Below are positions 16,901 through 64,000 of a DNA stretch of 64,000 bases, one piece after another; within the stretch, counting starts at the first letter, position 1, and the number at the start of each line of letters is the position of its first letter. The translations under genes were made by a program, and so were the position numbers. This stretch comes from Zygnema circumcarinatum SAG 698-1b (taxonomy: Eukaryota > Plantae > Zygnematophyceae): the NCBI GenBank assembly GCA_037447605.1, contig CM074806.1, positions 2,666,001 to 2,730,000 of the forward strand, in the 5' to 3' direction. The notes under the pieces are model-generated. The model worked only from the letters and a program-made list of their open reading frames with translations. It had not been told where the DNA came from and ran no database searches.

Positions 16901-19900
16901 TTTCTCAACCACGTGTACGGCCTGGAGTAGAGTTAGCGTGAATGTTTTCTCAAAAAAATGAATGCGATACTTACAATGTTGGCGCACTATTCTGAGACCA
17001 CAGTAGATTGCTAACCCTGAAGGATAGGCATCTTCCATTTGACTTTCTTCTCTATACTTGAGTCACCAACTACAGCTGCCTCGTCTGCTTTTCCTTGTTT
17101 AGTCCATGGCAATTGCTTGTAGTTGCTGAGTCGTGAGATTGGATGGAGGCCACCTATATATGTTTCAACTTCCTTAATTGTGTCAGGCTGACGTACATGT
17201 CCGGGCTACTTTCTTCTCCTTGCATAATTGTAGGATTGTACGAATAATGAGTGGTCTATATAATCCAGTACTGAATTTATTCCTTGCATGCCTATTCAGT
17301 GACGTTCACATTCATGCAAAGTATAGCAATTCTTCTACTCAGAAAGCAGAGTAGTCTATGTTTACCATTGGTGGGATATCAAAGTAAGGCATAAACCATA
17401 TTAACTGCGAGATTGTGTACAGAACTGGTGTGATGGGCTTTAGATTTTTATCCTTGAAAGGGAATAACGACATGAGATGTTTGAGCCTGTGCGTTACTGA
17501 TCTTCAAACCTCTCCAGACATTTTGGAAACGGATGTCATGGTTGGCTCTGCGTGAAATTGCTGTGTAAAACAGGTACTGGTCCTCGTTAATCTTGGTAAT
17601 AGAGGCCCCTTCGACATGCACAAAGATTAATGTTGCTAACTTAGTTTTGTACTCTTTTGTTTGTCATGGCTTTCTGTTTCAGAGGGCTTGGCAGGCACTC
17701 ATTGACTGTCTCCTATTTAACGGAGCAGCACCTGGTGGTAAAGGAGGTAAGGATTTAATTGGATTTTTTTAAAAATACTGAATTGGTGTTGTGAGAATAC
17801 TGAACAAAGTTGCTGCATTCATTCATGGCTTATAGCATTGTATCTGCAACAAATATCGGCAAGATGCCTGCTTCTGGTTTGACCGCAAGCATCTCGCACG
17901 CAAACAAACGGTTCATCTGACTTGATTAGCGGCTGCTGACATCTCCTTGCTTGTTTGAATGTGGACGCTGTTCTGCAGCAGTGGCTCAACCAGCGCCGAA
18001 ACGTTTGGCTCTGCTCATGATGCCACTTATCAACAACATGACATATGAGAATGACTTGCACGTCCGTATGGCATGCTTTCGTACTTGGAGCTACTTACTC
18101 AATCGACTGGAGAGTTGCATTACGACAACAGCAGTGTTTCAAGCTGTGATTCAGCCCATGTTTGATGTCATATTGCGTAAACACCCTGGTAAGGACGGCT
18201 GTCTCATTTGGCGGCAAGCGACTAGGTTGCTGGAAGGATTGCTGAGCGCTCGAGGGCAAAATCAGGCAAGTGAACAGCTACAGGAAAATTCACAGGCCGC
18301 AGAAGGCACGAATGCGAAAGAGGAAGAGAATGGTCCGTCAAAAGTCAGTGTAGGCAGTGAGGATCATTTCGACCATAGTACAGTGCAGTGGGGAGTATGG
18401 AGGCTAGAGCAGACGGATGAGCTGCTGAAACTGATAACGTTAGTCTTAAAGGCAGAATGGAGTGACCTTCGACCATCCACTTTGAAAAACGGAACCGAAT
18501 TCCATTCAACTAGCAGGGTCCTGAGGCTGTGGGAGCTTTTGGTAAAGGGCATAGAAGCAGCGGGCAGGGCAGATATACGTCCAGCACAGGAGCATGTTGC
18601 TTCGGTTCATTCACTAATGCGTTTTATGCACCAGATCTGTGTCAGAGATGCCTTTGCTGGCTCGAGCATGGATACCCAACAACAAAAGCTAAGGATGCAA
18701 GCTAACTGGTCGCTTCTGAAAGTTCTCATTACAGAACTCAAGCCACTTATCTTAGCTTCATCCTTTTATAAGCTGCCTATTGTGGAAAAAGGAGATGCTG
18801 CATTTGCAGCTTGGGCCAACAGTAGGCAAGAGATGGCCCCTGCAAGCAGGTTCGGAGAGGCTGCAGTCGATATTATAAGCGAGGAGGATGTTTTGGGGAG
18901 CTCAGACCCTCATTCAGTCGGAAGGGGTTCTCCTGCTTTCTACCTGACCGCTGTTTGGCTTCAAGCGGCATTGCTTCGTGGTTCTTTAAGTGGGTCATTG
19001 GAGGAGATAGTTAACCAGCTCCATGAGCTGATTTCTGTAGGAATGAAGGGCCAAGAGGAGCTGACAGATATTATGGTCATGCTGAACGTCTTGGAAGGAC
19101 TTAGTTCATGGTGGAAAAAGGGCGTAGAGGCTTTCCCAGGAGCATCGGTCACTGACATGTCCTCTCAGCAGGACACTGAAACAGATGAAAGGAATTTATC
19201 AACAGCAGCAGATACTGAACCTTGGTCGAAGCTAGATCTCCTTCTTGGGGTATGGAGAGTCATCGTCTCAGAGCTTTACGCACAGATAGCTGGTAGCAAT
19301 GACATCAAAGAACTGGGGGGCAACCGTCCAGATTTTGCGTATCAAGTATTAGAACAATTAATGCTGTTTCCTTTGCGGTGTGTCTTACTGGCAAACCAAA
19401 GGGACGTTTCTTCAGCGGGGCTCGAATCGACGAAAGAGCATTGGGACCAACTCTTGCGCACTGTCTATTGTGTAGCGACACTGAAGAATTTGCAACCAAA
19501 TGTCCTTCTTGCCAGAGTGTTTAAAGGTCTCTTAGAACTTATGGATATCCAGGGTAAGCCAAAGGCAGAGGGGACGTCCTTTCAACCTGCCGTCGATGGT
19601 TTGAAAGGCCCTCCTTCAGACTTGCTTTTTTCTTTCACTGCTGACAGTGCGAGAGTGCTCGAACCCCAAAGTAGTGCAGCAATGGCCATTACGAGGCAGC
19701 GTCGGAAGCACACCACAGTTGGTGGCGGCTCTCAGTCACCAGCGCGGTCTAGCAAAACTGTGGGAGGAAAAGAGGTGTTCGACTCAAGCTCCATCAGTGA
19801 CTTTCTAACTTTGCTTTCTAGGTATTGTGTGACTCACCAAACCATGTATGCCTGTTAAAAAAAAAAAAAAACCCCAAAAAAAGCTGTGATGTAGGGAAAA

Positions 19901-22900
19901 AGCAGTCAGGCATAAGTTGGTTTGAGGTCTTTCTCAGGCGTTGGGCGTCTATAGGACTCTTACTATCCACTGTGCATGATTTGTGGTCGTGACTTCTACT
20001 TGTGTCTTACAGGCTGTTGGATGTATGTCGATCACGGGATTGCTGGCATGAAGCTAAACGGTAGGCTCACCGAGTGACTTCATCAACCTGCTTTGCTGCC
20101 TCTCCCTAGTTCAATGTGTGCCATCGTCTCCAATGCCAACGTTAGGCATAACCAGCACATGTATGCGCTTTCAGAACGTCGGGTTGTTGGAGTACGTAGC
20201 AGATGTACACTTTGCTGTATCATAGGAACATTTTTTGGCTCAGCATTCGGCTGCTTTGCATTTTGTTCAAGGACTTTGCTTCTAAGAATGTTTAAATGTA
20301 GACACTTAGTCGTTTCTGTTGGATATCATTCATACTACAGGCATTTAGATAACCCTTTCTCACATTCAGTCTTCTTCTCCCTTCATGAAACTGTTGACGG
20401 CCACTGAAGGGAAGCTAGCGTTTAATGAAAGGGCTTCAATGGACAGACTGTGATTGGCATTCCTTTTGGTGGCAAAATGCATTTAGTTGTCACAAGCGGT
20501 AGTACTGGGACTATCTGCTTAACTTGAGGAGACCTCGGTGAACATACTGAAAGGTTTAAGTTGCAGCTGTTGGTGGAAAAGTACTTATGTTCCATATGAT
20601 TTTAAGCCGCCCTTTATGAAGATCGGCTAACTAGACCTCATAGACTTGTGCAGAATGTTGCCTGCTGTTTCTGCTTTGGCGAGTCGCCTGCACTCCTCCA
20701 ACGATTTCCTTCTTTTTGCCGAGGTGTGCTCCGTTTATGCCACATACACGAATATGCTAGAGTGTAGGTGCTAGCTATACATTTGCTGTACCTTGCTGTT
20801 GGTTTCAGGGTGTGATGTCTTCCAACAGGGAAGCTTTCCTCAGAGCATAAGAAATGAGCATCCTGGTCAGTAGATTGTTCGCCAGTAACAGATTCATTTG
20901 GGACCACGATAGCAGAACGAAAGAACGAAGAGATGAACGTTAGAATAATTAGAGAACCAAAAGTCAATAAAAAAGAAAAATTAGTACATGGAGCAATAAC
21001 TTCCTAGTGGGCTTGTGTGTGCACATATTTTATGCAGGCGATGTTTTCTCCTTTGGAACAGTGGCTTCGGATGGGGTGGGATTCTCCTGATGTTCGCAAC
21101 TCTCAGTTGCCCCAGGACAGCCAAGAGGTGATGCATGTGGACATAGCGCAGGAGCTTCTTCAACTCTTGGAGACATGTTGGCAGGATATGCTAACAGGGC
21201 TGCAGAAATGCCATCCTCGAGTCCAGTTTGATTCAGAATTACTCACACTTATGGCTCCTGCGTTATCCGCTGCCTTCGTGCATCCACGTACAAGCTTAGC
21301 CAATGTCACCATTGTCTTCTGGGAAGCTACGTTTGGCAAAAGGCACCTCGTGCCTCTGAAGTATCCGTCAAACTTGGTGCCGGTATTATCTAGTTTGAAG
21401 AGCAAATCAAGCATTAGTCTTCCTTTTTGGATCGATATTCCAGAACAAAATGGACATGCGACTTCAGGAAGTACAGCTGCTCCCAGCGGACCTGGGAAAT
21501 CTTCTGAGCAGACTGTGCCTCGTTTAGGGCCAAAATCGCGGCCAAAAGCTTTAGCTTCACGAGGGAGCTGGGCTGCAGACTTCCACGTTTTAAATAATGT
21601 CCAAAGCAAAAAGCAGACTGGGAGGGAAACTGCTGCGCATGAAAGTGCATCCAATGTCATGGCAGCGGCTCGGCCCTGGGTTGGGAAAACAGGGGCTCGA
21701 ATATTGGAAGGCTTTCTTCATGAACAGAGAGTTCGCATGCAAGGAGTGGGAGAAGCTTCCGATAGCACGACGGATCGCCGAGAAGATGGTACAGAAAAAG
21801 TTGGTGCTGAGCAGCAGAAGGACAATGGTGAGAGACCAGATGAAGCTGCTCCACTTACTTCGAAGACATCCTTGGACAAGGTGGTGACTGCAGAGGGAGC
21901 AAGTGATACACAGAACCCAGCCAATACTGCATTTGAATGTGGGGTTGCTACTGAGCATGCTACTTTAGATGCATCGGTTTCAAGGAAGGAAAATGCAGAT
22001 GTTCATCTCGAGGTCCTTAATGGGGAAACCTCTGCGCGTACACGTGGATTTCCCCTAGGGCAACTAAAAAACCCAATAGAGAGAAGAAAAGCAAGTGCTG
22101 CATTTCTTATGAAAAGTTTGCAGAAAACAATAGAAACTCCTCAAAGCGACTTACCTGTGGGGGAGGACGTCTTGGTGCCTGGGAATACCCGCTCCACGAT
22201 GTCCAGCTCACCTGCCACTGTCATGAAGGAGGATGCGCTGAAGGAAATAGAGCCTTTGCCTTCTCATGTCGAAACAGCACCTTTAGAACTTCCAGCAGAA
22301 TCTGTGCAAACGAAGAAGAGACTGCAGACGAGTACGGTCCCGGGAAGCCCAGATGGTTTTGTGGTTATCGCTCCTAGTCAGAAGCGACTGAAAGTGCACT
22401 TGACACGGCATCAGAAGGAGGTTTTAGCGGCTCAGCACGGGCAGGGACCGGAAGCTGGGGGTGGGGGCGGGGGCAGCATGATGTATGGGACAGGAAGAGC
22501 ATTCAATGGGACAGTGCCGGAAGGCTCTTTGCCGAATCGATGGTGGGAGGATACTCAAGACACCGTTGAAAATGGTGGTTGTAGGCAGGATGGACCGATC
22601 ACAGTCCCCCACAAAACCCCATCCAGTAGGGACGTACGAACAGTTGCATCGGGACAGGATGAGGAAGCTGGCACTTGTACTCGGACAGTGGTCTTTGTAA
22701 AGAGGCAGAAAATCCACGACAATCAAGCAACTCCTATTGCTGCGTCCACATCTGGTAGTCAACCATCAGTCAAGTCTGGTAATGGCTCAGCTGCAAAAAC
22801 AGAGAAGGACAGGGAATCAAAGGCGATTGGATTGCTCGGCAATGGTAGCGATGCAGTTCTTAAACGCTGCAATACTGATTCAAGACCGAGGAAAGACGAG

Positions 22901-23986
22901 CAAAGTCAAGAACAGAAACCAAGCGATGATCCTTTTGAATCCTTCCATAAATCACCAGAAGTTGTCGCGCAACAGACAGAGCCTGGGCATGCAGAAGAAG
23001 GAAGAGCAGCTTCGATGGTGGAAGCAGAGGATTGCTGTATTGTCCAAGCAGAGCAAGCTTCTGATGGAGAGATTTCAGCCAACAAGCGCAGGAAGGTTAG
23101 TAAAGAAGGGTCTGCAGAACTTGTACGAAAGGTTGTCACATCAAATATTGACGGGGCTCTTTCTCTGAAGCAAGCAGATAGTTCATTCAATTTTCTCGCA
23201 TGTGAAGCTGAGTCCACCAGAGGCGATTCGGGGAATGGAGGAGTACAATTCAGCTGCGGTCTTGCAGCCTCTGAAAAAGGAAATCTTGAATCGTCGTGTA
23301 TCAATATCCGGATGACAGCGCACAACTTAGCTGCAACTAATAGGTCTGATGCGCAGCAGCCTAACGAGCAGGCCGAGCAGATTCATGAACCGCCGTTCGA
23401 ATCTGGGGCGGGAGAAAAAGCGCTCCCTGAGTTAGAGGCTGGACAGACATCAGAAATTATGTGCGAACAGGTCGACTCTGTGACACATCTGCCTCAGCTT
23501 CCTGGTCTGTCACCTGACGCCTTACTTGGGGATGTACGACAGCCTTCTGTTGGAGTAGCAGCTGGGAGAGAAGGGAATGAAACTGAATGTCCAACACCCT
23601 TTCCCCTCACATTCCAAGCAGCTGCCGCAGACGAGATAGAAGCACAACAGCTATGTGAGCTGCAGGCAAAGGGCCTGAAATCTCTTCAATCAAATGGGAA
23701 ATTGGATGAGGTCTGCAGCAGAGAAGACTGGTCTGTCGCAAGACGAGAAGCCATGGCTTCCTTGCTGCGAAGGTTTCAGGAGGTTTCGAGGGAGGTGGTC
23801 GGCACTCTGGAAGGTCACAGACAGGATGATGAGTCCCTAGTGGACATTGCGGAAGAACAGGCGGAGCACGCTGCCATCCTCACTGAAGTGGCGGCTCTCC
23901 AGCGCTGCCTGGCCTCCCACGCTGCGAGTATCTGCTCGCGCATGGCTAAGGCCTCCTCCAAGAAGATGGATACCATTCTGTCATAA
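13953..23986 (+). CDS. RIF1: RIF1-like (Rap1-interacting factor 1, Rif1_N HEAT repeats) protein, ~1957 aa
   Basis: Exons 13953-14050, 14419-14535, 14757-14824, 14976-15037, 15199-15348, 15834-16010, 16643-16870, 17683-17746, 17979-19821, 20013-20060, 20654-20723, 21038-23986 (5874 nt, in frame). Peptides AMKTLGYLLHH, IGAWCIAQQQL, VRAWPWLVKLLG, RAWQALIDCL, KRLALLMMPL, CFRTWSYLLNRL, HPRTSLANVTIVFWEATFG..LKYPSNLVPVL resemble plant RIF1-like proteins. Long disordered C-terminal half. Small internal exons are less certain. Confidence 0.8.
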
Positions 23987-27294: not shown

Positions 27295-29334
27295 ATGGGG
27301 GGCAAAAATTCAAAGGAGAGATCAGAGGAGGGGAGGGAGGGTGAAGGCGCTCCGTCTACACCAGAGGAGGGCCCTGCTTCACATGCAGACCATGGAGGAG
27401 AGTTGGAGGAGAGAGAAGGTGAAGGAGAGCTGCAGGAGAGAGAAAGGAAGGAGAGGGTGGGCGATGGATTAGAGGAGGAGGAGGAGAGTGGAGAGAAGGA
27501 GGGATCCGAGGGAAGAGGGAAGGAGGGAGAAAAGGAAGGAGAGGTAAGGGAGAAGGGAGAAGGAGTGGAGAACCGAAAGGAAGGAGAGGATAGGGAGAAG
27601 GAAGGAGGAGGGGCAAAGGAAGACAAGGAAGACAAGGAAGGAAAGGAAGGGAAGGAGGACGAAAGGGAAAGGGAGGAAGGAGGGCAGAAGGGAGAAAGGG
27701 AGCGAGAGGAAGGGACGGATGAAGGACCGGGGGAAGAGAGAGAGAGAAATGGGAAGGACGGAGGAGAGAATGATGAGGTTGTTTGTCCTGCCAAAGATGA
27801 AGGCGAGTCTTTGGCAAGCAGCACAATCTCAAAGGCTGCCACTTCGGCGGGAGAAGCTAGCCAACATTCTGGAGCGTCTATATTCGCTCTTCTCGTTTTG
27901 CTACCACTCCTGCTCACTCTGGCTGCAATCTTGGCAATCATTTTGCCTGGAACTCCAACTACGCAATGGAAGATCATGCCCCCACTGGTGCAAGAGCATT
28001 ACGGCAAGGGCTTAACTCTAAAAGTGGCTGTAGACGGCATTCCTCTTCAAGTCTTTCTTCGATCAGCTGGGCCGAAATCCGGCGAGGTCGTTCTTTGTCT
28101 CCATGGAGCAGGCGCGAGCTCTTTCTTGTTTCGCAATGTTCTGCAACTTTTAGCGAAGGAGGGCTTAAGAGCAATAGCCTTGGATTTTCCTGGAACCGGT
28201 CTTTCTGACAAACCATTGGTTCCTGAAGTCTACGGCACTTATCAATTGTCACGCGTGATCAGCCAAGTCATGACATCCTTGCAGCTTCCGCCAGTGCATC
28301 TTGTGCTGCATGACACTGCCGTGTTTGCTGGAATGTCGTGGGCTTCCAGCAATGTTGACATGCTGCGCAGTCTCACTCTTCTGGACTCTCCGATGGAGCT
28401 CCCTTTTGACCCAGCTTTCCCTTCATGGATCGTTGCTTCTCCTCCGCTGGCAACCATAGTCACCTCCTTTGACTGGTCAATGAGCCTCTTGTTCCGTACA
28501 TACTGTTCAAGAACGATGTCAGCAGAAGTAGCTGCTTCACATGCTTATCTCTTGACCCGCAATGGAGGATTGAAAGCTGTATCTATGGCAGTTAGCCAGA
28601 TGAATAGGAGCATTGCATTTGCGGAGGGTCTATATCGAGACGCTGTTGGTATACTCGGGCAGACTGATTCTCAAATTTTATGGGCGAATTCATGGTCCTC
28701 TTTATGGAAAGAAGAAGGAGAAGAGCTGTTAACCCGCTGGCCATTAGCGACGCTTCATCAGCATGGAGGTAGTCGATGGTCACAGGTGAGCTAAGAAGAT
28801 TTGGTAACTTAAAGTTTAAAGTGGAAGATCGAAAATGTATCTTGTATTTTCTTTGTTCTCAAATCGTAGAATTCAAGGATGCTGGTTTATGAAACCTGAG
28901 GCAAATTCATTTATTTACTCATGCACGCATACCCTCGGCAGTCAATAGCAGTCGTTAATGTTTGTGCGATTTCTTTTCGTCTCTAAATGCTGAAGTTATC
29001 CCAGATGCTGTGTTTCGTTTCTGGTGAGTTTTCACGCATCGTGGAAAATCTTTCATGCAGAGTTCTCAGCTTTTGTGTTTGGGGTAGTTTCAACATTGTT
29101 TTTAGCATATAATTAAATTTCGTCCAAATTCATCCAATGGGTTTGCAGGAAGATGTGCCAGAGGAGATCTCACGGCTAATTTCAGCTTTCGTTCGCTCCC
29201 TGCCCCCTACCCGGTGGTCTCCTCCAGCAGAAGAGATTCCAGAACGTATTCAGCGCCAGTTTGATGCGATGCGAACCCAGGGTCATATGCATGGCGGCCA
29301 CAGCCATGGACCTGGCTGCAGCCATTCGCATTGA
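27295..29334 (+). CDS. AXR4: AUXIN RESPONSE 4-like ER membrane alpha/beta-hydrolase-fold protein, ~558 aa
   Basis: Exons 27295-28785 and 29149-29334. Charged N-terminal tail, one hydrophobic segment (IFALLVLLPLLLTLAAILAII), VLCLHGAGASSFLFR, ALDFPGTGLSDK, HLVLHDTA, GGSRWSQ|EDVPEEISRLISAFVRSLP...IPERIQ, His-rich C-terminus, as in plant AXR4. Confidence 0.85.
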
Positions 29335-49200: not shown

Positions 49201-51081
49201 TCCGCAATCTCCCTTAGAGCAGTAATGTCTAACTACAAACATTTGCAACTCCCCAAAGAGTTCTGCTGAGTACACTCACAGCACATTCAGTTTCGCATAG
49301 GCCATGGAGTCCACCACAAGTCGAAGAAATTTCATGGGCTCATAATGGCGCGAGGTGTCTGCACAAGATCATAGTCCCAAGCACAAGACTCATACCCTGA
49401 CTTCTAACAACTTGAACCAACTGCGTACATGCAATGTTGATGTATCATTCCGTCAACAAACTGAGAACAAACCTCTAATATTCAAAAAAAAATCAATAAA
49501 AAGTGCTCCAAAAGCATCGTCTTTGTAGAAAGGGCAATGATCCCCACTGCCCTTCAGCTACATGTTTTTTGACTTGGAAACCGTACAAACTGATAAGTTA
49601 CACATCGGATGTCTATCAAACGTGCGTTCCAATATAGGCTATCAAATAATTGCATTGGTTGTTCAGATTTAACGACTCATATTGCACTAAAGCGTTGGCA
49701 CAGACAGTGTCACCGGCTTTCACCCACTCTCTCCCTGCCTTCAACCGATTTATCAAGTTCATGTGGTCCAAAAACTATCAAAAAAACCTTAGGACTCATT
49801 GGATATAAATAAAGACTAGTCGAAGAGATCTCTCATCTAATCTTGTTTACGTAAATGCAGAGCTAACCCTACAAAATGTAAAGGCCAGCCTACCGACAAG
49901 AAGACCACGATGACGAAAACGAGGAGCGTCTGTTATAGACCATGGGGCCTGCTGGATTTGGACAACTCGTGCATGCCAATCGTAGTGAGTCAGCTGACTC
50001 AGAGTCTGCTCCCCACTCCCCAACCCTCGTCCCCCTTTCAAAGAAGTGTTTCCTGCACTTCTTCCCAGTTCCACCTATTGCATAAGTGATTTCTGGAAAA
50101 CAAATGAGCACGGACGACTGCCTCTTTCTATATGAAAGTCAATCTTCTTCCTCAAAGCAATGCCGTAAGTGCTACGCATTCAGAACTAACCACAGCGACA
50201 GAACGAGAGGACAAATGCGACAAATAAAGCTGGGAAAGAGGAAAATTACAAAAATCTCACCTGCAACGCTTGGAGCACCCCATACACTGTCGCAGCCTGC
50301 GAAAGAAACCACTCCTTCCCTCACTGAGGCAAGTTCGAAACAGTATCTTATAGACAGGAATCATTGTTTCACTATCTCCAGCAGGAGATAAAGTGGTTTC
50401 TTATGTGAGTGATTTCCATACCTCCACTATCGCGGCTGAGCCATTGGAAGGGACCTCCAGGTAGTACGACTCGTCTGTCTCTAGTTGCAGCTGCAGGTCC
50501 ATTCTCAGTCCAAAAGTGCAAGAGAAATTTTCATAGTCTTAGTGCCAGCTGGATGAAAAAGAGAGACACGGCCAAAGAAAGAAGCGGAAGCATTTTTTTT
50601 CATTTTTTCGGCATGCAAACTTTTAAAGGTCACCTGCGCGTACCGTTTCATCTGCAGAAGCCACGCTGACAATGACTTCGCTGAGCTCAACGACCTTGTC
50701 CGAGCCAACCTCCTGTGCAAAGACATGGTGCGCTGGATGCGTAAAAATGAGGCTGTTCGTCCGCTCAAAAGCTGCCAAAAGCAGGGGAGAGTCTGCTGCA
50801 GGTCCGACGGCCTGGAAATGGAGAGGTCGCCGAAGCTGGACATGAGCGCTGCCACGGGTAAAGGATTGAGGCAGAGGCCACAGCAAGACAGCTTCCTCCG
50901 CAAGGCTTTTATTTGAAACATTCGCGTCAAAATTCGGCTTGGGGTCAGTAGAACCAGCGCCTGCTGCAGCGCCCTTTCCTTTCATAATCGACCAAGGAAG
51001 GTTAGAGAAGCGGCGGGCAGAGGCCTCCTGCACGAACACCGCTGCGAGAACTAGAAGCAGGGCGCCTTGCAGCCTCGCCAT
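46289..51081 (-). CDS. HEXO: Beta-hexosaminidase (GH20, HEXO1/HEXO3 type), ~566 aa
   Basis: Exons 51081-50644, 50490-50422, 50296-50261, 50005-49894, 49358-49280, 49108-48986, 48872-48856, 48686-48638, 48041-47941, 47800-47741, 47581-47548, 47408-47310, 47122-47063, 46898-46648, 46461-46289 (1701 nt). Signal peptide, LLWPLPQ, DAPRFRHRGLLVDTSRHY, LNVLHWHIVDDQSFP, ELDVPGH, catalytic HLGGDEV, GGEVCMWGE, WPRAAAAAERLWS. Confidence 0.95.
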
Positions 51082-51515: not shown

Positions 51516-52591
51516 TGTAGCGTAACGGAGCTGCGTTCGACGGATCCGCGTCCGTTCAGTTGTACTTGACATATTCATATTCGGTGTCACGGACCGGCAT
51601 AATCCAGGAGTTGCCGACGGAAAATGCGAGAAGGCGGCGCCATGTGTTGGCGGCCCACGGCACGGCACACCATCCAGCTAGGCGCACTCGGAAGCGCCGC
51701 AACATGCCGCCGATTGTCAGCAGTTGACCTATCAGAAGGCCCCACGTAGTCACTCAGGCCTCTCAGTGGGCAGTTGGCCAATCAGGGACTGTCACTGCTA
51801 AGGCTCAAGATCTATTGTCAGTGTTAAGTAGATGGGATGTCAGTGATGCTTGATTGTCTTTTAGTGCTGGGCTTAGTATTTGTATTTGCTGTGTGGTTTG
51901 TTGTCTTGTTCTTCTCTTCTTCCTCTTCAGTTCCAGCAACAGATGCTAAGTGTGAGAGAGAGAGAGAGTTCCATGCCATAGATAGAGAGAGAGAGAGAGA
52001 GAAAGAGTCTTCTTGCTGATAGCATTTAGACGTCCCATTCAGCCCAGCCAGACAAAGATTTCAGTGAGAAGATACTTTCATTGTAATGACAATCCCCAGC
52101 CAACCGCTGGCTGGGGTGACTTTCCAAAATACAACCTTTATCTAAGTTGAGTCCTGTTTTCCCTTTGCGGTCACTATGCCAAGCTACCCTCTTGTTCTAT
52201 CCTGCCTTACATTCCTCCCAATGACCAATGATANNNNNNNNNNCGTACCAACGGTTACCCGTAATTGTACGGACGAACGGCGAATTCCAAAAGGGGGATC
52301 CGGGCCGCGGCCCGAGATCCAATCGCGGGACCGGATTGGTCCCGTGGTGCCGGTAATCCCCAATCCTCCCTTAAGCCGAGGAGGGGACCTTGGCTGCTGG
52401 TGTGGGGCGCACCGTGACTATGTGGTGCCCCCACGTGTGAACCAGTTCTTACGGTTCGGACCTAGGACCTCCGTGGTCCTATAGGGTATCCGATGCCCTA
52501 ACCGTTAGGTACTGCATTGGATGGAAACATAAAGCCACGCCGGGCCCTAAGTAACCCTTCCCCCTTGGGGTGACTGTAGCGTTTCGCTACA
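51516..52591 (+). repeat. 5' LTR (interrupted by an assembly gap)
   Basis: TG...CA termini with inverted TGTAGC/GCTACA. 51516-52233 aligns with 60180-~60890, near-identical over ~51830-52000. The block after the gap shares the GGGGCGCA...GTGCCCC motif at about the same distance (~190 bp) from the end as in the 3' LTR. Confidence 0.8.
52234..52243. other. Assembly gap (10 N)
   Basis: Run of N. Confidence 1.
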
Positions 52592-52691
52592 CAAGCTGAT
52601 CTTCATGAGTATTCAGAGGAAGACCTGGGACCTCAAGAAGAACAGGCGATCGGAAATCCAAGGACGGATTCAGACTCAGAGGAAGAAGCAA

Positions 52692-54710
52692 TCAAAAAGT
52701 TCTCCCGACAGGGGTGGCGACCGAGGAAGCCGTGCCGGAGGAGCTAGCGCCGTTGACATTAGGCAGGGGATGTGAATGCGGATCACTTTGGTTGACAGGG
52801 AGTCTGCGCAAGGCAGTTGCAATCTCGGCGATCCGGGCTTGAGCACCTTCTTCAGATGTGATGGGGGATTCGGACCAAGCCGGTTGCAAGGCTGCGGCAA
52901 TCTGGGCAGTGCGTGAGCGGGCATCAGGATCGGGCTCAGCACCCAATGCGTTTGTCAGGGAAGGGGAGTCCATGGGGTGCAGATGGATAGGCGGACGTTG
53001 CAGGATGGTATAAGCGGGTGAAGGAGGTGGAGGCGAGCGAAAGGGAGCCGGAGTTCTTGGTGGTGTGTGAGTAGCCGGGAGCATGTCCATGAAGGTGATC
53101 TCTGCAGGTGAGCTCCCTGCAGCTGCCTCTTTCCCCTTTCGGGCCTTCTCACTTGAGAGTCTCCGCATGCATACACGGGCATCATGTCCCGTGATCTGGC
53201 AGAAGGTGCAGGTCCATGGTCCACAACGCAGCCGCGGATTGTGATTCAGGCCGCAGGCAAGGCAAACGCCCTCTGGAACCCCTGCCTCTGTCATCCGACG
53301 GCGCAGATCGGCCCTGGCAGCTTCTCTCTCTTCGGGTGTGCGATCGGAATAAGGACCCCGATATCCTGGACGAGAAACGTCTGGGATGTGAGGATTCACC
53401 GCCGGCTCAATGGGATGCGCCGGATCATGAGGGTATGGGGAAAGGGGAAGGGGCTTGGTCGCGCTGGCTATAGCCAGAGGCTGCACCACAGGGACTGCTC
53501 GGACGTCCTGAGCAGGGATGCCGGAGAAAGACGGCTTGTTCCTAGAAGATGTAGTGTAGGGATCATACAACTGCTGATTCTGTGTCTTCAGGAACTGCTG
53601 GTAGAGTCGATCTTGTCGTGGATCTGTTGCATTCATGTAATGTGTTCGTACATGGCGGTTGCCTCTCTCTCGATCCTTCTGAATTCGCTCTGCCCTTTCT
53701 AACAAGGCCTGGGCATCTGCTTGTGGGTTGTCGCGCAGCTCACGATCCAGGTGGAGATCCTTCTCGCTGATAGCCTTGCGGAACCACTGGTGAACTTCGG
53801 AAAAGTCAGGCAAGTTCTCGATCGTATTTGCCATGCGCACAAAACGCTCAGTGAATTCAAACAGCCGCTCATCACTGTAGCATTCTATGTAGCGAAGTCG
53901 GTCTAGCACAGTGATCGGATCTGAAATCCAGCGTTGTCTGAAAGCTTGCTTGAATGTGTCCCTTGTCAGGGTGCCGACGACATCCGCTTTGTGCCAGTTT
54001 CGGGACAGCTTCCAATTGACTGCCTCTCCTTCCAGCGCTCCAAGGGCCAGCTTGATCCACTGGTCCTCCTTCAGGTTTGCTTGTGCTGCCTTCTCCTCAA
54101 GGTGTCTCAGCCATGCTTCTGCATCTTCCTGCTTGCCGGTGAAGCCTCTTGTGATGATGCCCGTGGTATCCCTCACCTCACTCTTTTCAGGAATCATGGC
54201 TATCAGTTTTGTCATCATCTCTTCCATCTTGCTGGGAAACTCAGATCTGACACGTGTGCTTCTCTGCAGGTTGGTGCGAAAGCTGGAGGGTCCTTGCGAT
54301 CGTCCTGCCCTTGCCCCTGAAGCCGCTCGCCTGGGGCTGCCGGATGGGTAAGTTGTGAACGCCGGAGGTGAGGGTGTCTTCTGAGGAATCCCTTGCTCTG
54401 CTGTAGGACTGCGTGCCGCTGCTGTGCTTGAAGGGACTCCTGGTGCAGTAGTTATCCGACTGAGATCCCGTGGGTTGTGTCCCTGGTGGGCCGCGGGGGG
54501 GACCTCAGGTTCGAACGGCACTCCTCTCTTCACGGCATCTGCGGCCGTGACAGCGACTGGGCAGGCTGCAAGCTTGATCATCCTGCGTGCATATCGCCAG
54601 CGAAGTTTATGGCCATCACTGCCTAGATGGAGTCGCTGCAGCTCTTCAATCGACTCGATCTGCTCAAGGTAAGCCAAACTGGGATAAGGGTTCTCTTCGG
54701 TGATGCCCAT
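52692..54710 (-). CDS. gag: Ty3/Gypsy Gag (capsid plus two zinc knuckles), 672 aa, uninterrupted, antisense to pol
   Basis: Capsid-like FTGKQEDAEAWLRHLE...WIKLALGALEGEAVNW...TFKQAFRQRW. Knuckles CLACGLNHNPRLRC (CX2CX3HX5C) and CTFCQITGHDARVC (CX2CX4HX4C). Frame open from ~54787. Confidence 0.9.
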   Translation of the reverse strand: MGITEENPYPSLAYLEQIESIEELQRLHLGSDGHKLRWRYARRMIKLAACPVAVTAADAVKRGVPFEPEVPPAAHQGHNPRDLSRITTAPGVPSSTAAARSPTAEQGIPQKTPSPPAFTTYPSGSPRRAASGARAGRSQGPSSFRTNLQRSTRVRSEFPSKMEEMMTKLIAMIPEKSEVRDTTGIITRGFTGKQEDAEAWLRHLEEKAAQANLKEDQWIKLALGALEGEAVNWKLSRNWHKADVVGTLTRDTFKQAFRQRWISDPITVLDRLRYIECYSDERLFEFTERFVRMANTIENLPDFSEVHQWFRKAISEKDLHLDRELRDNPQADAQALLERAERIQKDRERGNRHVRTHYMNATDPRQDRLYQQFLKTQNQQLYDPYTTSSRNKPSFSGIPAQDVRAVPVVQPLAIASATKPLPLSPYPHDPAHPIEPAVNPHIPDVSRPGYRGPYSDRTPEEREAARADLRRRMTEAGVPEGVCLACGLNHNPRLRCGPWTCTFCQITGHDARVCMRRLSSEKARKGKEAAAGSSPAEITFMDMLPATHTPPRTPAPFRSPPPPSPAYTILQRPPIHLHPMDSPSLTNALGAEPDPDARSRTAQIAAALQPAWSESPITSEEGAQARIAEIATALRRLPVNQSDPHSHPLPNVNGASSSGTASSVATPVGRTF

Positions 54711-55229
54711 CTTCAGTCTCTTCAGTCCTCCCTCCTTCCACGGGTCATCCCTTGGGATCCATGCCTGAGGAGGAAACTGACGATCTCAATGAGGATGAGC
54801 CGACAGCGGCGCAGCCAGAGCCGACAGCACCGGCGACAGAAGACATGCATGTCAACCCGCCCCATCGCCCTCGGGCAGCCCGTTTCTACCCCCAAGCAGC
54901 CGATCGTCGACCACCCCCCCCGACGGACGGCCTATCACGATTGAGCATGGTTCGCCGACTCATAGAGAACAAGGCTAAGATGCGGCATTACCTTGTCACG
55001 ATTGTCTTATTTGGGTACTGCAGTCTTTGCGGCCGTGGATTCATAGCTGGCGACAATGCGAGCCACCCTGCTGACCTCACCGTTCTATGGCACCTCTCGG
55101 ACATCCTAAGCCACGGATATCCACCACATGGCCACGGCGCCTCTTCCAGACCCAGTTCGCTCTCCCCACCACCCTCCTCGCCAGATTCATGTCCTCCCTT
55201 TGATCCCAACACCCAACGTGCGAATCATT

Positions 55230-58200
55230 GTCAATGTATAGCTAAACGGTCATCCAAGCAAAGCCATGATCGACACAGGAGCTATGCGCACAGTTCTGTC
55301 CAAGCCAGTGATGAAGGCTGCAGGGGTTAAGTTGGACAAGACGCTCGAGCCCATTCCCCGATATGTGGGGGTTGAGGGGAGCCTACATGAAGAAAGTTGG
55401 GCCGATTACCCAGCCGTCGCTCGGCCTTGGCGAGATAGAACCCGCGGTGAATCACGGTCATCCGCGGCTGTGAGCACTATTCTATCCTGTAGCGGGCTCC
55501 AGTTGGCTCATTGCGTGGGAGCTTCAGTATCGACTTTGCTAAGTGTCGGTACGCCTCTGGCTGGCGGGACGGTACTCCTTCCCATCATCCTCGAGTCCTT
55601 TGCCACCTCCGCCTTCCCCAAACGCCACGCCACGGCGCAGGTTTCCTACCCAGAGATCACCATGTACCATGCTGTCGGCAGCCCCCATTCTTCCTATGGA
55701 TCGGCCAATTCTGATACCGATGACGAGACTTCCCATCTTGCTCCCCCGAATCCAGCCCTCTGTGCGCCGACGGAGGAACTTTTGCAGCCCAGGAGATAGG
55801 CACCAGCTTCCGGCCCACCCGAGACCATCAGCGATGAAGAGTGGGTACGGAGATAGAAAAGGAGTCAAATGCGATTGTGGGGCCAGCGATGTTCCGGACC
55901 GATCAAGAAGCATTCTCAACTCGTAAGTGCTGCGCCAAAATCACCTAGTTTTAAGCCACGACATTCCGCTGCGACAGCCACGGCAAGACCCGCGATTGAG
56001 CACCGTCGTCACGGGGATGCACCTCCGTGATGACCATGACTCCCCACTGCAGCTTTCGCGCTCGGCCCGGGCCGATGTCGAGCAAACGGTCCCGGAAGTG
56101 AAGCGTGGCGGCCGGCCCGATGGAACCGGAGAAGGGCCTTAGGCGACCCGGCCCGTTACGCCCCAAAGCCAGGATAGCACCTCGCACAATGGAATTGCTC
56201 GGAAGCGGAATGCCATAGCAGTAGGATCCTTATCGTTCTGGGATGTGGACCTGATTCTCCAGCGTCTCCCGAGGCCAGATGGTTCGGCCTGAACATCGCG
56301 AGAGTCCTTACGGCGGTCCCTGCGGCCAGGCCCGACCGGCCGCAAGGCGGGCTTAAATGCGGCCACGCTTTGTGCGGTGGGCGGTGCTTCCTTTGGGCTC
56401 AAGAATTCCAGCCCGGACTCACGGCGCACGGCCAGCCAGGTATTCGGCCTGGCCAGCGCTAACTTTCCTGCTGAGCCTTCGTGGATGATGCTTCCCTCCG
56501 CAGCCAGGGGCCGTCCTCCACCGCGACATTGACCAAGTACTTATTTGACTAAATTGATGCTGGCGTTTGAAGGTGCACGCAGGGTGCAAAATGGGGCCAT
56601 CGAGGAGATCACTCATCTCGGGCACCGCCTCGGCATCAATGGCCTGAAACCATCACTCGACAAGATTGAAGCGATTGACCTTATGCCGATTCCACAGAAC
56701 CTCACTCAGCTCAAGTCTTTCTTGGGACTCACCTCATTACATCGCGGTTCATCGAGAACATTCCTTATCGGCGCCCCACTGCATGCCTTGGAAGCCGCGA
56801 GGTCCGCTTCTGAGATGATGGAGCCGGTAGCGGGGATTTGTGAGGGCGCTCAAAAAGGTGCCCTCACGCCCCGGGGCTCCTTATGCGCATCAATTCGACC
56901 CCCACCACGCCCACCATCATTGGCCGGCCCGGAGTCGGGGGCAGACTTTGGAAGGTGGCGATCCAAGCCTTCTCGGATGGGGAACACCCGGTCAGTTATG
57001 CTAGCAGGGTTTGTTCGGAAACCGAGACCAAGTACCGCCCTACTGAGGGTGAGGCAGCGGCTATTCTCTGGGCACTGGAGAAGCTCAAGCTCTTTTACAG
57101 CCTACCAGCCCATTATCATTAAGACTGACCACATGCCACTCACTTGAGCGCACATCACATGGCTACCACTACGACCTAAGTTTGCCACGATGTTGATGAA
57201 GTTGGAGGTATAATGTGCTCAAGGTCACTCACCGTCCCGGCCGTAGTCACGGCAATGCTGACGGCCTCAGTCGCAATCCTTCGGCTCCCCTCCTCTGTCA
57301 CGATCCGGCCGTTCCTGAACCCATCCCTCCACCCACCCTCTTGAACCCTGAGCATCTTCCCATTGAGATTTTTATTGCCGATCAAGACTTGCATGATGTC
57401 ATATTCGCAGATGGGCTGATCGATATTCCGGCCACGGCCACCACCCTCCATTGCTGGCAAGACCCTGACTTCACCCACGGCCACCCTCATGCGGATCCTT
57501 GGGAACTCCTCATGGATGACGACGGCGAAGCTCCCTTTCTTCCTCCCCATTTCCCGGCGCAGTGGCGTCCCATTCCGGACTCACTTTCCCTTACTGCTCT
57601 CACGTCACTTGTGGCTGCGCCCGCACGGTACTTGCCCCACTTGCTCGGGGCCAGCGGCGGGCTGCGGCTGCTTCCTCCGCCCTTCGGCACTTCTTTGTTG
57701 ATGATGGCGGACAAAATCTTGTACCTCCCCTCACGGCCTTCTGTTCCTTTCCCCAATGAACGCATGGAGATTTTGGATGTCGCCCACGATTCCCAGCCCG
57801 GCGGATTCCACCTTGGCCAGAAGAAGATGGTCGCCATGCTGCAGGAGCGCTATTACTGGCCCGGACTCCATGGCGCAGTGAGCCGATACGTCGAAACCTG
57901 CACCCGTTGCCAACGCGGCAAGCGCTCTGCTCCCCCCGACCGCCAACCCCTAGAGATGGGTGAGATCCCGATCCGAGGCGTTGCCGAAGATTGGAACATC
58001 GACACCTTTTCTATCCCCCAGCTCGGCACCCCCTCTGGCTACATTCGGGTCTTCCTAGCCGTGGACAGATACACCAAGTGGGTGGAAGTTCACGCGACAG
58101 AATCTAAGCATTCAGTCCACTCTGCCCGCCTCCTGACGGCCATCATTCACCGTCACTCTCTCCCCTACTCTGTCCACTCTGACAATGGCACCGAATACAA

Positions 58201-58730
58201 GGGGGCGTTTGCCAAGCTCATGCAGGACTTCCGCATCATTCACCGCACCTCTAGCCCCTACTCCCCTGGCGAATGGGCTTGGAAGCGTCTCCTCTGAGAC
58301 GGTCAAGGCAGCGTGCGTTAGCGGCTACTTGTGAAGGCTGAGGCCGGGCTGGCGCGAGTCATCCTCCACAGTCTTCCGTGCAACACCTCAGTTCACTCCT
58401 CCAGCGGCTTCTCTCCCTACGAGGCTCCTCATGGCCGTAAGCCCCATTCCCTTGACCTCCTCTGTGAGCCCTGCTTCTCACGATAGCGCGCCTCCACCGG
58501 ATGGTGCAAGCCCAGCCGACTCGGCCTGCGCTTCCAAACCCTAGATTCCATGGCCTCCCACCACCTCGAGCAGCGCCTGAGGCGACAACTCACCCGACTT
58601 TGGGAGCCTTGAAGCTGTGGCTAACTCTCTCCCGCGCCAATCCCGGTCGGCGCGCGTCATTTCATTTGGCTCGGGGAATCTTACTGAAACCGATTTCAGC
58701 CAGACTTTTCGTGGTTGGGCCCCTTCATTA
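55230..58730 (+). pseudogene. pol: Frameshifted Gypsy pol (protease, RT, RNase H, integrase)
   Basis: Protease V*LNGHPSKAMIDTGAMRTV (stop just upstream). RT remnant FVDD at 56478-56489 and LGH...GLKPSLDKIEAI...LKSFLGL. RNase H GEHPVSYASR...EAAAILWALEK...IKTDH. Integrase HHCC (AHDSQPGGFHLG...CTRCQ) and core (WNIDTF, AVDRYTKW, HSDNGTEY). WLGPF at 58712-58726. Multiple frame changes. Confidence 0.88.
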
Positions 58731-60179
58731 ATGTCGGTCGTCCGGAGATCGAGGTTGGGCCATCATTTAGGAAGGCCACGACTCTAGATAAGAAAAACGC
58801 GGCTGGCGTTCGTGGATGCGACATTACGTGCCGCTTAGCGTCGGCCAGTTCCTCCCGCGATGAAATTTGTGTTTCGCGACCGACCCTTGTGATCTCCTCG
58901 TACCCTACCCGATGGCCCGGTAGTGTTAGTGTCTTTATAGTTAGACATTATGCGGGTTCACACTAACATTGTTGTGGTCTCGGTTGGGAAACATGAGATA
59001 CGCTAGTATTGATCTGGAAATACGGTCGGGCCAAATGTGGTAGCCCGTCTCGCTTTTGAGCGCCCGGAGAATGTCAGCGATATGTGAACGCTGTCGAACC
59101 CGCGCAGGCATCGCAGTCCTTGGACTCGCTTAGTCAACTACGGAGGAGACGAGTCGGCGTACCTGAACGGGTAACAGCCTTGAGAAATGCGGCTTAACCG
59201 AGGAGATTTCGTCGCCCAGGGCCAGCCTTGAATAGTAATATGCAGTGCCTTGTAGCAAACATCTTGTAGCCTTGTGACCTTGTCTGGGCGAAGCGGCGGA
59301 AGATGTCTGCCTTCGAGCAGACGACAATTGAATGGCCGAGCTATGCAGGCGGCTTGGCCAGAGTGGTCTTGGCGTAGGTTCGAAAGACGCAAAACTGGAT
59401 GTTGAAACGTACCCATTGCTGAAGCGCATAGAGGCCGCCGTGACGTGACATCCGGTCAACAAAGGAAGATGTCAATGCTGCGGCTATGTGATTATATAGG
59501 AGTTTAGCTTTGTTATGTAGGATACCCACATTAGCCTCTTGTAGTCAGTGACTTATTACGTACTGCACTTTCGTGTTCTTTAGAACATACACTTTATTAA
59601 TACTTAAGGTAGTGAGTAAGGGGAGAAGTAGCTAGTGAGAGGGGGAGAACTTCATGTGGGTGACATTCTTATTATAAAGGAGTTTTAGAGCTGTGAGCTT
59701 TCTCTATACTCTCTAGGTATTAATGATTTCACGTGCTTTCGTCTAGCGTTCATTACCATGAGTTATAGGTATGAGTGAAGTGAGATAGAGTGAGAGAGAG
59801 TGAAGATGTCTTCATCGGTGGGAACCGGAGTTCCAATGGAGGGCGACACGCGAGGTGGCGCCGGGAGCAGCGAGCAGATCCATGCTCCAACAATGACGAC
59901 TCCTCATTGGTCCATTTCTACTTCCCGCCACTTTTTGCCCCCTTCGCCACCATTTCGCCAGTATGCCGTATCTTTCGATTTTGAATTTGTCTTACTCCCT
60001 CCTCCACCTCCGGTCCTGCCGATACTCCCCATTGCCGAATGTACGCGGAAGCTTCTCCACACGGCCACCGACTCGCCTCCCGTCCACGTCATCCTTAGCT
60101 CCTCCCCTACCCTTTGTCTCTTCTTCCTTGCGCCCGCAGGGGCGTGCGCTTGTTTCCCCCCCCCGGCATGTGCTACAGA

Positions 60180-61174
60180 TGTAGCGTAACGGAGCTGCGT
60201 TCGACGGATCCGCGTCCGTTCAGTTGTACTTGACATATTCGCCAGCCGATTATCCGCGGACCCGGCATAATCCGGGGTTGCGGCCCGAAAATGCGAAGCG
60301 GCGCCATGTGTTGCTTGACTCCGCGACGCGGCACACCATCCAGCTAGGCGCACTCAGGCGCCGCCCAACATACACCGCCGATTGTCAGCGATTGACCTGC
60401 TCCGAAGGCCCCGCGTAGTCACTCGGGCCTCTCGGTGGGCAGTTATTATCGAGGGGTATCCTTTGCTAAGGCTCAAGATCACATTGTCGGTGTTAAGTAG
60501 ATGGGATGTCGAGTGATGCTTGATTGTCTTTTAGTGCTGGGCTTAGTATTTGTATTTGCTGTGTGGTTTGTTGTCTTGTTCTTCTCTTCTTCCTCTTCAG
60601 TTCCAGCAACAGATGCTAAGTGTGAGAGAGAGAGAGAGTTCCATGCCATAGATAGAGAGAAAGAGAGAGAAAAGAGTCTTCTTCTTGATAGCATTTAGGC
60701 GTCCCATTATTGACCGGACAAAGATTTCGGTGAGAAGATACTTTCATTGTAATGACAATCCCGACCAACCCAGGCTGGGGTGACTTTCAAAATACAACCT
60801 TTATCTAAGTTGAGTCTGTTTTCCCTTTCTTGGTCCTTATGCCAAAAGTACCATCTTGTTATCACGCCTTACATTCCTCCCGATGACCCAGTAACTAGAA
60901 GCCTAGCTAAGAGGCCCAGCCAAGGAGGGGCGGGAGAGAGCCCCAAGGAAGAGGGCTCTTTGCTCGAGTCCAGCCTTGGGTGGGGCGCATCTTGGGATCC
61001 CTACGTGCCCCATTGCAGCGTACCTCACGAATCTCCCGGATCACGACTATCTTTGTGACGGACCCACAGAGACCAACTGACCGCTTCATTGGTTTGGCCG
61101 CGGACGAGTGGCCGTCTGTTGCATGCACAAATAGCTCGGCGGTCTCCTCTTAACCCCACTTATCTTGTGCTACA
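60180..61174 (+). repeat. 3' LTR (~995 bp)
   Basis: Starts TGTAGCGTAACGGAGCTGCG and ends TTATCTTGTGCTACA. Contains the same (GA)n and CT-rich blocks as the 5' LTR. Confidence 0.88.
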
Positions 61175-64000
61175 GCGTGCCGCGAAGATAGTGAGGTGCG
61201 ATGCGAAGCTGAGCCGCGATGGCATGCGGCCACCGGCGTCGATGTGCTGGCTGTAGGTTGGGGTGGTGTTGTGGAACACACTGCGGCTAAACATCGAGAT
61301 CGAAAGGTACGCGCGGCAACAAGATGGCGGTGACTGAACCTGTCGCGCAGCTAACGATGCTCTCACCGACTGGTCTCTTGGCCCGTCTAGTGATCGTGAT
61401 GGTGGCCAATGCGAGGATGAAGCACGGGCTGGGGGCGGCGGTGGCGAAGCGGACACAGCGGGTAAAGGTATTTATTTGGAAACTCACCCGACGGCGGTTG
61501 CTGAAATCGTACCCGATGGTAATGTGCCAGAGTAACGTCTACTTGAGCGAATGGGACGTCACCAAATATTTATGGTAATTCTTTCTCTCACAACATGGCA
61601 TGGAACTCTCTCTTCTCTCTCTATAACACTTGGCATGCATTTAGCAGCCTTGAAGAGAAAGACAGCCGCCGCAACAAATAAATACTAGAAAACCCGGCAA
61701 GGCATCGCGGCGCGCTCCCAGCCTGCTGCTTGACAATAAATCTTGAGAATAACTGGCCAGTAACGATCCTGACAACCAACTGCACTAGCAACGGCAATAC
61801 GTGGAGCTGCCGAATAGGTCAGCGAGCCTGTCGGCGGCGCTTAAGCGGTGTTCCCGGTGCGCTGGCGGATGATTAATGGCGTTCGTAGACACGCGCGCAT
61901 GGCGCGCCCTGTCTCCGTTGGCGGCTCACCAGACCCGCCCCGATAGTGACGCGAGGCATATGTCAAAAAGTACGGTGGCGACGCATCCGTCGAGCGCCTT
62001 CCGATACGCTACATCTGTATCTTGCGCCGCGCTAACGGCGTCAACAAAATATCAGAAACGATGATAACGTGGGCCGCTGGCAGTGTCGGAGAGCCGTCGG
62101 GCTTCGTAATGGAAATATCGGAAGAACGTATATCGGAAGCGGCCAGGCTGGCCGGAATGTAGGCGAAGGGGCAAAAAGTGGCGGAAGTCTGAAGAAATTA
62201 GCGGCGGGGTAGAAATGGACCCGGTAGGGAAGTAGTCATGGCGGGGTAGATGCGGAGGAGAACTCTTGTCGATGCATGAGCGATTAAACCATCGAGGAAG
62301 GAACGGCGTGGCGGCCGCGAATGCGATCCGGTGTGAGCGCCCGGTAGCAGGAGCGTTCCGCTGGGTCGGGGCCCTCGAAATGATATGGCCCAACACGGGA
62401 TCTCCGACGGGGTGACGAGATGAAGAAGGGGGCCCAACCCGCGGAAAAGCGTTGAGTGGTTTGGCGAGATTCACGAGCCAAATGGTGATGTGGCGCTACG
62501 ATTGGGCGAGGAGAGCGTGGCGTGAAGCCTCCCAAAGTGGGGTGAGTTATGCGTACGTGGCGGCTGGATTGAGGTGGTGGGAGGCCATGGAATCTAGGGT
62601 TTGGAAGCGGAGGGCCAGGAGCTGAAGCTGGGCGACCCGATCCGGGGGAGGCGCGTCATCGTAGAAGAGGGGCTCGGCGAGAGGAGGATCAAAAGGGAAT
62701 GCGGGGCTTCTGACCATAGAGGAGGCCGTGAGGGAGAGAAGCGTGGAGGTGGGCGGAGGTGTTATGCGTGAAGACGGGGAGAGGGATGACCTCGCGCCCG
62801 GTCCACTGCGGCTCAGCGCAGCAGCTGGACACCGCGCATCGCTGGCGAATGCAGATAGTACGTTCTGCAAACCCCGTTACGCGAGTATAGGCTAGGAATA
62901 CTTGATGAATGTCTGGAAGTCTGCATTAGCTTAGCGAGCCCACTTGTATTCAGTGCCATTGTCGAGTGGGCGAGTAGGGGAGAGTAGCGGTGAATGATGG
63001 CGTCTCGGAAGGCGGAAGTGGACGGAATGCTTAGATTACGTAGCGTGAACCTACACCCACTTGGTATATCACATCCCGCGGCTAGGAAAGACCCGAATGT
63101 AGCGAGAGGGTGTGGTAGGGGATAGAAAAAGGGGTCGATGTTCGATCTTGGCGCCCAGCGTATTGGGATCTCACCCATCTCGAGGGGTTAGCGTGCGGGG
63201 AGAAAAACTGCTTTAGCGTTGGCGGCGAGTGCGAGGTTTGATGTAGCGGCTCACTTGCGCCATGGAGGAGCCAATAGTAGCGCTCTGCCGCCGGGGCCAC
63301 CATCTTCTTACGTAGAGGGTGGAAGCTTTGCCCGGAGGTTGGGAATGGTGGGCGGCGTCGAGAATTTCCATAAGCTCGTTAGGGAATGGAGCGGGAAGGC
63401 GGAGGGAGGTAAAGAATAAATGCGTCATCATCGGCGAGAAGGGAATTTCCGGCGCGGCGGAAGCGACGAGCCCTCTCGGTGTCCCGTGACAAAATAGAGG
63501 CGGCGTCGCGAGAGTCATGGCGTAGCGAGAAGGGAGGTCGAGAATGGGCGTCATTGGCGGGAAATGGGGGAGGAAGAAGGGATTTTCACCGTAAATTAGA
63601 TCCATGAGGGAGTTCCCGCGGATCGCATGGGGGGTGGCCCGTGTAGGTGAAGTCGAGGGGGTCTTACCCGGTGATTGGAGGGTGGTGGCGCGTGGCGGAA
63701 TATCCCGATAATTCCATGCGAATATGACCTCATATGAGAGTCTTGCTCTGCGATAAAAGATCTCAATGGGAAGATGCTTCGAGGTTGGGGAGGGGTGGGT
63801 GGAGGGATGGAGTTGAGGAAACGGCGGATCGTGGCGAGAGGAGGGTAGGGGATTGCGGCTGAGGCCATTGCAGTGACTACGGCGGGGCGGTGGTGACTTT
63901 AGTACATTGTACTCCTCCAACCTATCACCCATGGAATTGCAAACTTAGGAAGTAGAGGCCAGCCATAATGTGCGGCCGGTGAGGGGCATGTGAAGTGGAT
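61175..64000 (-). mobile_element. Highly divergent inverted copy of the same element (integrase, 3' region, LTR), tail-to-tail with the 3' LTR; runs off the window
   Basis: The reverse complement of 63840-63960 matches 57160-57285, and that of 62560-62650 matches 58490-58600 (shared CGCTTCCAAACCCTAGATTCCATGGCCTCCCACCACCTC). An LTR start ACAGATGTAGCGTA lies on the minus strand at ~62013, and 62013-61175 aligns loosely with 60180-61174. Confidence 0.85.

Follow-up and report, generated by a model that had tools for sequence, protein, structure and literature searches.

Can a Ty3/gypsy retrotransposon carry its gag gene on the strand opposite to its pol gene and its long terminal repeats (LTRs)? 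The question is raised by a locus of the zygnematophycean alga Zygnema circumcarinatum SAG 698-1b, found in a window of 64,000 nucleotides (NCBI GenBank assembly GCA_037447605.1, contig CM074806.1, positions 2,666,001 to 2,730,000 of the forward strand; all coordinates below are positions in this window). There, an earlier note made from the letters alone had described a single gypsy element whose Gag open reading frame (ORF) occupies the normal gag position but reads on the minus strand, against pol and against both LTRs. Three options were put forward: an internal inversion of about 2.05 kb, a contig mis-oriented next to an assembly gap, or a real family in which gag and pol are transcribed divergently. 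A Gag-like ORF antisense to pol and LTRs is indeed present, but another reading fits the evidence better than any of the three options. Most probably the locus is an ordinary one, made of retroelements that are nested and truncated and that lie across an assembly gap. More specifically, about half of our confidence goes to a locus made of two retroelement units in opposite orientation, the reverse, gag-bearing unit lying within the gag of an older gypsy or directly against it, rather than to one element with a flipped gag.

The reverse Gag-like frame and the plus-strand gypsy element

The coordinates first given for the minus-strand ORF are correct: it runs from an ATG at 54710 to 52692, encodes 672 amino acids (aa) and is intact, with 697 codons from stop to stop (52695-54785). 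When 52244-55241 is shuffled 1000 times, the longest open frame averages 158 codons and never exceeds 346, which marks the minus frame as truly coding. From N to C terminus, its product would comprise a disordered region, a capsid-like helical core, two zinc-knuckle motifs and a Pro/Ser-rich tail. The two motifs, located by pattern scan, lie at 53169-53264 on the minus strand: an exact C-X2-C-X4-H-X4-C knuckle (53169-53210), C-terminal to the capsid core, and just before it a variant, C-X2-C-X3-H-X5-C (53223-53264). In the entire 64-kb window, the pattern scan finds only two exact CCHC knuckles.

Profile searches bring the protein near the Ty3 capsids, short of significance. The whole ORF is without any Pfam family at E<=10; when the core alone is searched (aa 160-400), the best family is Ty3_capsid (PF19259) with an E value of 0.05-0.07 and 13 bits against a cut-off of 29.1, a match that is below every Pfam threshold and that covers aa 212-271 (53898-54077, minus strand) and profile positions 42-103. 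In a search with the ESM language model, the same core falls among Retrotrans_gag clusters at 0.94, with 24 of 30 matches in the Retrotrans_gag set, which we treat as a lead only; the whole protein, at 0.89-0.90, points to Retrotrans_gag and zf-CCHC. A single-sequence AlphaFold2 model of aa 165-530 is all-helical, with a mean pLDDT (predicted local distance difference test) of 44.6, too poor for a fold search. The ORF1 protein of a long interspersed nuclear element was considered as another identity and rejected, the core being capsid-like and no endonuclease starting behind it. The earlier assignment to Gag lacks a significant Pfam match and is moderately supported; we accept "Gag-like" as a working identity.

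Relatives of the Gag-like ORF were found neither by a word-index search nor, at E<=0.001, by an exhaustive phmmer search against 1.84 billion representative proteins; PDB sequence searches gave no meaningful match, and scans of metagenome and viral contigs were empty. This absence says little, as the host lineage itself seems to be missing from the databases: for a 499-aa alpha/beta-hydrolase ORF of the same window (27295-28794, plus strand; Abhydrolase_1, 5.4e-13), the best relative, from a EukProt transcriptome, is only 43% identical, and the word-index search with the integrase described below yields three matches, all distant. A metagenome scan with that integrase was empty as well.

On the plus strand, the domains of pol follow one another in the order protease (PR), reverse transcriptase (RT), RNase H (RH) and integrase (INT), all on one strand, as in a Ty3/gypsy LTR retrotransposon. 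Strand and domains are as originally described, but pol is not one continuous reading frame, since several frameshifts and stops interrupt it. The protease remnant (55200-55540; Pfam gag-asp_proteas, 5.3e-06 and 27.4 bits, just under the cut-off of 28.2) has its DTGA from 55272, an in-frame TAG at 55239-55241 that falls within the first protease strand, and a change of frame before the C-terminal motif. The N-terminal half of RT (55540-56390) is unrecognisable; the C-terminal half and RNase H survive as remnants spread over three frames (56390-57144, by three-frame reading and tblastn), and at least five frameshifts and one stop fall within the RT-RH region (56390-57224). Adjoining it, the integrase (57200-58294) is a single open frame of 365 codons with linker, HHCC finger and DDE core (Integrase_H2C2 8.7e-17, rve 2.5e-12). 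Decay within pol is thus very uneven, which could be due to gene conversion, to selection at the family level or to uneven polishing. Downstream of the integrase, before the right LTR, comes about 1 kb of additional, partly AT-richer sequence (58650-59900); the same interval measures only about 0.5 kb in a neighbouring copy, and the extra sequence could be another insertion. This neighbour, a further, diverged member of that gypsy family, lies tail-to-tail with the element just described (61300-64000, minus strand): its integrase lies at 62525-63992 on the minus strand with 74% nucleotide identity, the window end cuts it before gag, and its 3' LTR starts at 62013 with ...ACAGA|TGTAGCGTATCGG, mirroring the junction at 60180.

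The block is enclosed, as had been claimed, by two LTRs of the same orientation, both on the plus strand. The left LTR (51516-52228), delimited by self-BLAST and by alignment to the right one, starts TGTAGCGTAACGG and ends GACCAA; the right LTR of the plus element (60180-60890) is preceded by ...ACAGA. The two are 87% identical (Kimura two-parameter distance, K2P, of 0.144), with 14 indel events in 700 bp, and the pair is a mosaic: the central 200 bp are 98-99% identical (K2P 0.01-0.02) while the outer parts are only 80-86% identical (0.16-0.25), which suggests gene conversion or LTRs of different origin. No target-site duplication accompanies the pair, the flanking pentamers being AACGC on the left and GTAAC on the right, and the left LTR terminates in AA instead of the CA of TG..CA ends.

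The left LTR is followed by the five bases TGATA, all that is available there for a primer-binding site, and then by the only assembly gap of the window, a run of 10 N at 52234-52243 (N-run scan) that separates this LTR from everything to its right. Because the gap starts five bases after the LTR end, the left LTR may or may not belong with the interior, and its join to the interior is a scaffolding decision. The contig to the right of the gap begins inside a putative repeat, so that both contig ends lie in repeats. Just left of the left LTR, the minus strand at 50623-51081 faintly resembles the N-terminal domain of beta-hexosaminidase (E 0.002, under the cut-off); it may be an exon of the host, in which case the left flank would be host DNA.

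The case for two opposed units

The first argument for two units is that gag and pol are discordant in their preservation: gag is open over 697 codons, while pol has lost its frame in protease, RT and RNase H and half of RT beyond recognition. In a neutral simulation at the divergence of the LTRs, gag stays open with P=0.013 (K 0.07 per lineage) or P=0.002 (K 0.1); the simulation admits substitutions only, and indels at the LTR rate would lower these probabilities much further. Since an open frame is improbable under LTR-level neutral divergence while pol is broken, gag is either younger than the plus element or under selection.

A second argument comes from what lies behind the gag stop. About 100 bases past it, the minus strand shows an LTR-type terminus (TGTAGCGAAACG), which is identical to the family LTR start (TGTAGCGTAACGG) at 11 of its first 13 positions and which forms the hairpin TGTAGCG-AAA-CGCTACA, TGTAGCG being thereby present on both strands at 52575-52591. 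From 52591 a non-coding segment runs leftwards to the contig end (52244-52591, minus strand); it is putatively the start of a 3' LTR, or of a repeat resembling a terminal-repeat retrotransposon in miniature (TRIM), that would belong to the reverse unit. The heptamer TGTAGCG is strongly enriched in the window (17 occurrences, 4.3 expected), at sites that include 24563, 25697, 29668, 44602, 52575/52591 and 62013; it marks the start of the right LTR (60180) as well as that of the neighbouring reverse copy's LTR (62013), and looks like a terminus common to several LTR/TRIM families in this genome. Nothing similar to 52244-52591 occurs elsewhere in the window, and neither Rfam (E<=1) nor standard ARAGORN detects a tRNA-like module in it; weak cloverleaves, appearing only under very relaxed ARAGORN settings, were treated as noise. 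No protease is seen downstream of gag on its own strand, over the 450 bases that are available.

The 100-base spacer between gag stop and terminus (52592-52691) is pyrimidine-rich on the minus strand, as read from the sequence and from a purine profile (0.65 purine on the plus strand), and this is why its plus strand reads as acidic peptides. Such peptides had been quoted as flanks of an inverted block; they exist, but carry no coding evidence, all three plus frames being open at 52609-52744.

The third argument lies on the other side of the block. Between the gag ATG and position 55018, a junction zone (54711-55018) is, by its sequence and frames, assignable to neither unit, and somewhere within it the well-kept reverse unit must give way to the decayed plus element. 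Immediately to its right, at 55019-55062 on the plus strand and about 70 codons before the protease active site, a decayed C-X2-C-X4-H-X4-C zinc knuckle can be read in the sense direction across one frame slip. It is the sole site in a frameshift-tolerant scan, and only one in 300 shuffles of the 531-bp flank contains any. The usual position of a gypsy nucleocapsid is just ahead of the protease, and this knuckle may well be a remnant of the plus element's own sense gag. The reverse Gag carries two knuckle motifs itself, so that the locus seems to preserve two gag genes, at least in part. No sense capsid-like sequence was found for the plus element, and the plus-strand ORFs inside the gag block have no Pfam match at E<=10, so that the block hides no sense gag. 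A DGLSR motif at 54872-54943 was considered as an RH-INT linker and dismissed as chance, its spacing to the next CxxC being far too short for an integrase. The junction zone and right flank show no similarity to the family LTRs beyond shuffle level, no significant inverted or direct repeats flank the gag block, and profiles of CpG depletion and purine skew over the block boundaries offer no usable discontinuity.

We therefore propose a composite of two units. Unit 1 would be an old plus-strand Ty3/gypsy element with its sense-gag remnant (55019-55062), broken PR-RT-RH, integrase and right LTR; the left LTR may be its 5' LTR. Unit 2 would be a better-preserved minus-strand unit, made of the 672-aa Gag ORF and of the LTR-type terminus 100 bases on, extending from 52591 leftwards into the contig end; its open frame would mean either that the unit is young or that Gag is under selection. 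In the most economical history, a gag-bearing LTR element, gag-only like the TR-GAG elements discussed below or else internally deleted, would have inserted in reverse into the gag region of the older gypsy; a later deletion would have taken the 5' LTR and leader of the reverse unit together with most of the gag of the host element; and finally the assembler would have broken in the repeats, the 10-N gap hiding the rest of the reverse LTR and the leader of the host element. This composite accounts at once for the same-sense outer LTRs, the position of gag, the discordance in age, the sense knuckle, the terminus behind gag and the contig breaks in repeats.

Several observations weigh against such a composite. 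Neither a 5' LTR nor a primer-binding site of the reverse unit is visible to the right of the gag ATG, so that an extra deletion must be assumed, and the right flank is without similarity to 52244-52591 or to the family LTRs. The LTR-type terminus consists of 11-13 bases and a hairpin, with weak polypurine-like similarity upstream, and the sense knuckle is a single short motif that needs one frame slip. Pol itself has decayed unevenly, with the integrase open over 365 codons, and uneven preservation between gag and pol need not, for that reason, mean separate origins. Lastly, searches with gag, with the segment 52244-52591 and with the junction yielded no further copy in the window or in the protein, metagenome and viral collections.

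Elsewhere in the window, two long plus-strand ORFs, of 635 aa (17951-19858) and 989 aa (21017-23986), match neither a Pfam family (E<=1) nor a PDB sequence; the shorter one shows faint tblastn similarity (E 0.057) to the RT-RH piece of this gypsy element.

Competing explanations

An inversion private to this locus, in which break repair or short inverted repeats would have flipped a segment of about 2.05 kb containing the gag of a single gypsy element, we regard as unlikely. It is in keeping with the usual gag position of the minus ORF between same-sense LTRs, with the lack of a protease behind gag on the minus strand, with no second element's LTR being seen right of gag and with both block flanks being purine-rich on the plus strand. 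However, it leaves the sense knuckle before the protease unexplained, given the two knuckle motifs that the block already contains; an intact gag stands beside a pol and LTRs that have diverged heavily, and an LTR-type terminus lies 100 bases past the gag stop on the minus strand. The block ends carry no inverted repeat above chance, and the six-base inverted microhomology pointed out by the earlier note is at chance level. A phase test for an in-frame inversion was attempted and proved powerless, all three plus frames being open at the left flank.

Somewhat less probable still is that the locus holds a genuine novelty, that is, a reverse Gag that is a lineage-specific gene under selection, whether domesticated by the host or part of an active gag-only family, or, less likely, a gypsy lineage with divergent genes. 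The version with a selected Gag gene, in which the reverse ORF, whatever its origin, is kept open by selection, either on the host, which might use it as a restriction factor, for instance, or inside a gag-only family, has by itself a small chance of being right. It draws on the survival of an intact 672-aa ORF amid otherwise ruined surroundings, and on an ATG start, a capsid-like core and knuckle motifs within that ORF. But no orthologue or paralogue emerged from the word index or from the 1.84 billion representatives, and the open frame is just as well explained if the ORF belongs to an ordinary, young transposon copy.

We are equally doubtful of an assembly artefact, be it a contig that is chimeric at about 54.7-55.0 kb or a wrong scaffold join at the gap, through which different repeat copies would mimic one element. 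In its favour, the 10-N gap sits exactly at the LTR end, the neighbouring contig starts in a putative repeat, the locus consists entirely of repeats, and breaks of the indel type cluster in RT-RH. Yet the gag-pol junction lies inside one gap-free contig. The sole gap is to the left of both gag and pol, so that a mis-oriented contig cannot flip one relative to the other, and this option of the earlier note falls in its simple form. There is, moreover, no inverted duplication of the chimeric-read type, and nested or truncated elements explain the picture without any error.

A true family architecture, with gag and pol of one gypsy lineage transcribed divergently from the internal region, is very improbable: the gag ATG (54710) and a plus-strand ATG (54761, opening a 208-codon frame into the protease) do face apart, and gag and integrase are both open, but a bidirectional promoter and two leaders cannot fit in the 50 bases between them, in a genomic RNA driven from the LTR 2 kb of antisense gag would precede pol and the paired transcripts would form double-stranded RNA, the plus element has its own sense knuckle remnant, gag and pol are strongly discordant in preservation with PR, RT and RH ruined in this copy, and literature searches on reverse gag genes or internal inversions in LTR elements found no precedent.

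Comparison with known systems

If the locus were a single element, it would represent an undescribed organisation of an LTR retrotransposon; the evidence points instead to everyday events, namely transposons that nest and suffer deletions, and assemblies that break in repeats. In plant genomes LTR elements are often found nested within other elements, whichever way round, and the sites they prefer include the gag-protease boundary and the 5' untranslated region (Jedlicka et al. 2019, PMC6911290). The proposed two-unit composite would share with these nests a younger element within an older one and an inserted unit that is better preserved than its host. It differs from them in that only one end of the inserted unit is present, as a putative 3' LTR start; the 5' LTR is missing and the other end is lost in the assembly gap, so that the nesting is here an inferred one.

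As to the nature of the reverse unit, LTR elements that contain only gag have been described as TR-GAG, a non-autonomous group defined by two LTRs, a primer-binding site and a polypurine tract around a single Gag ORF, within less than about 4 kb (Chaparro et al. 2015, PMC4350172). The reverse unit resembles TR-GAG in its lone Gag ORF, in having no pol behind it and in the LTR-type terminus close downstream. In contrast with TR-GAG, it has no demonstrable LTR pair, primer-binding site or target-site duplication, its 3' LTR is cut by the contig end, its Gag, at 672 aa, is without a detectable sequence relative, and its host is an alga rather than an angiosperm.

Compared with the Gag proteins of Ty3/gypsy elements (Retrotrans_gag PF03732, Ty3_capsid PF19259, zf-CCHC PF00098), the minus ORF has in common a helical core with the usual F-x-G...W-L...W...F pattern, one exact CCHC knuckle and the language-model similarity to Retrotrans_gag clusters; it departs from them in scoring under all Pfam thresholds, in its long, low-complexity N- and C-terminal extensions and in having no match among the 1.84 billion representative proteins. 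This is where the remaining interest of the locus lies: an intact, sequence-orphan Gag ORF in a poorly sampled host lineage, a candidate for activity or for domestication. For annotation, the lesson is that a gag may stand where one expects it, between two LTRs, and still belong to another element.

Antisense ORFs are familiar from Tat/Ogre-type gypsy elements, where they occupy the stretch from pol to the 3' LTR and are not known to resemble Gag. The Zygnema locus shares with these elements an ORF that runs opposite to the pol strand inside an LTR-bounded region, but here the ORF stands upstream of pol and is itself Gag-like.

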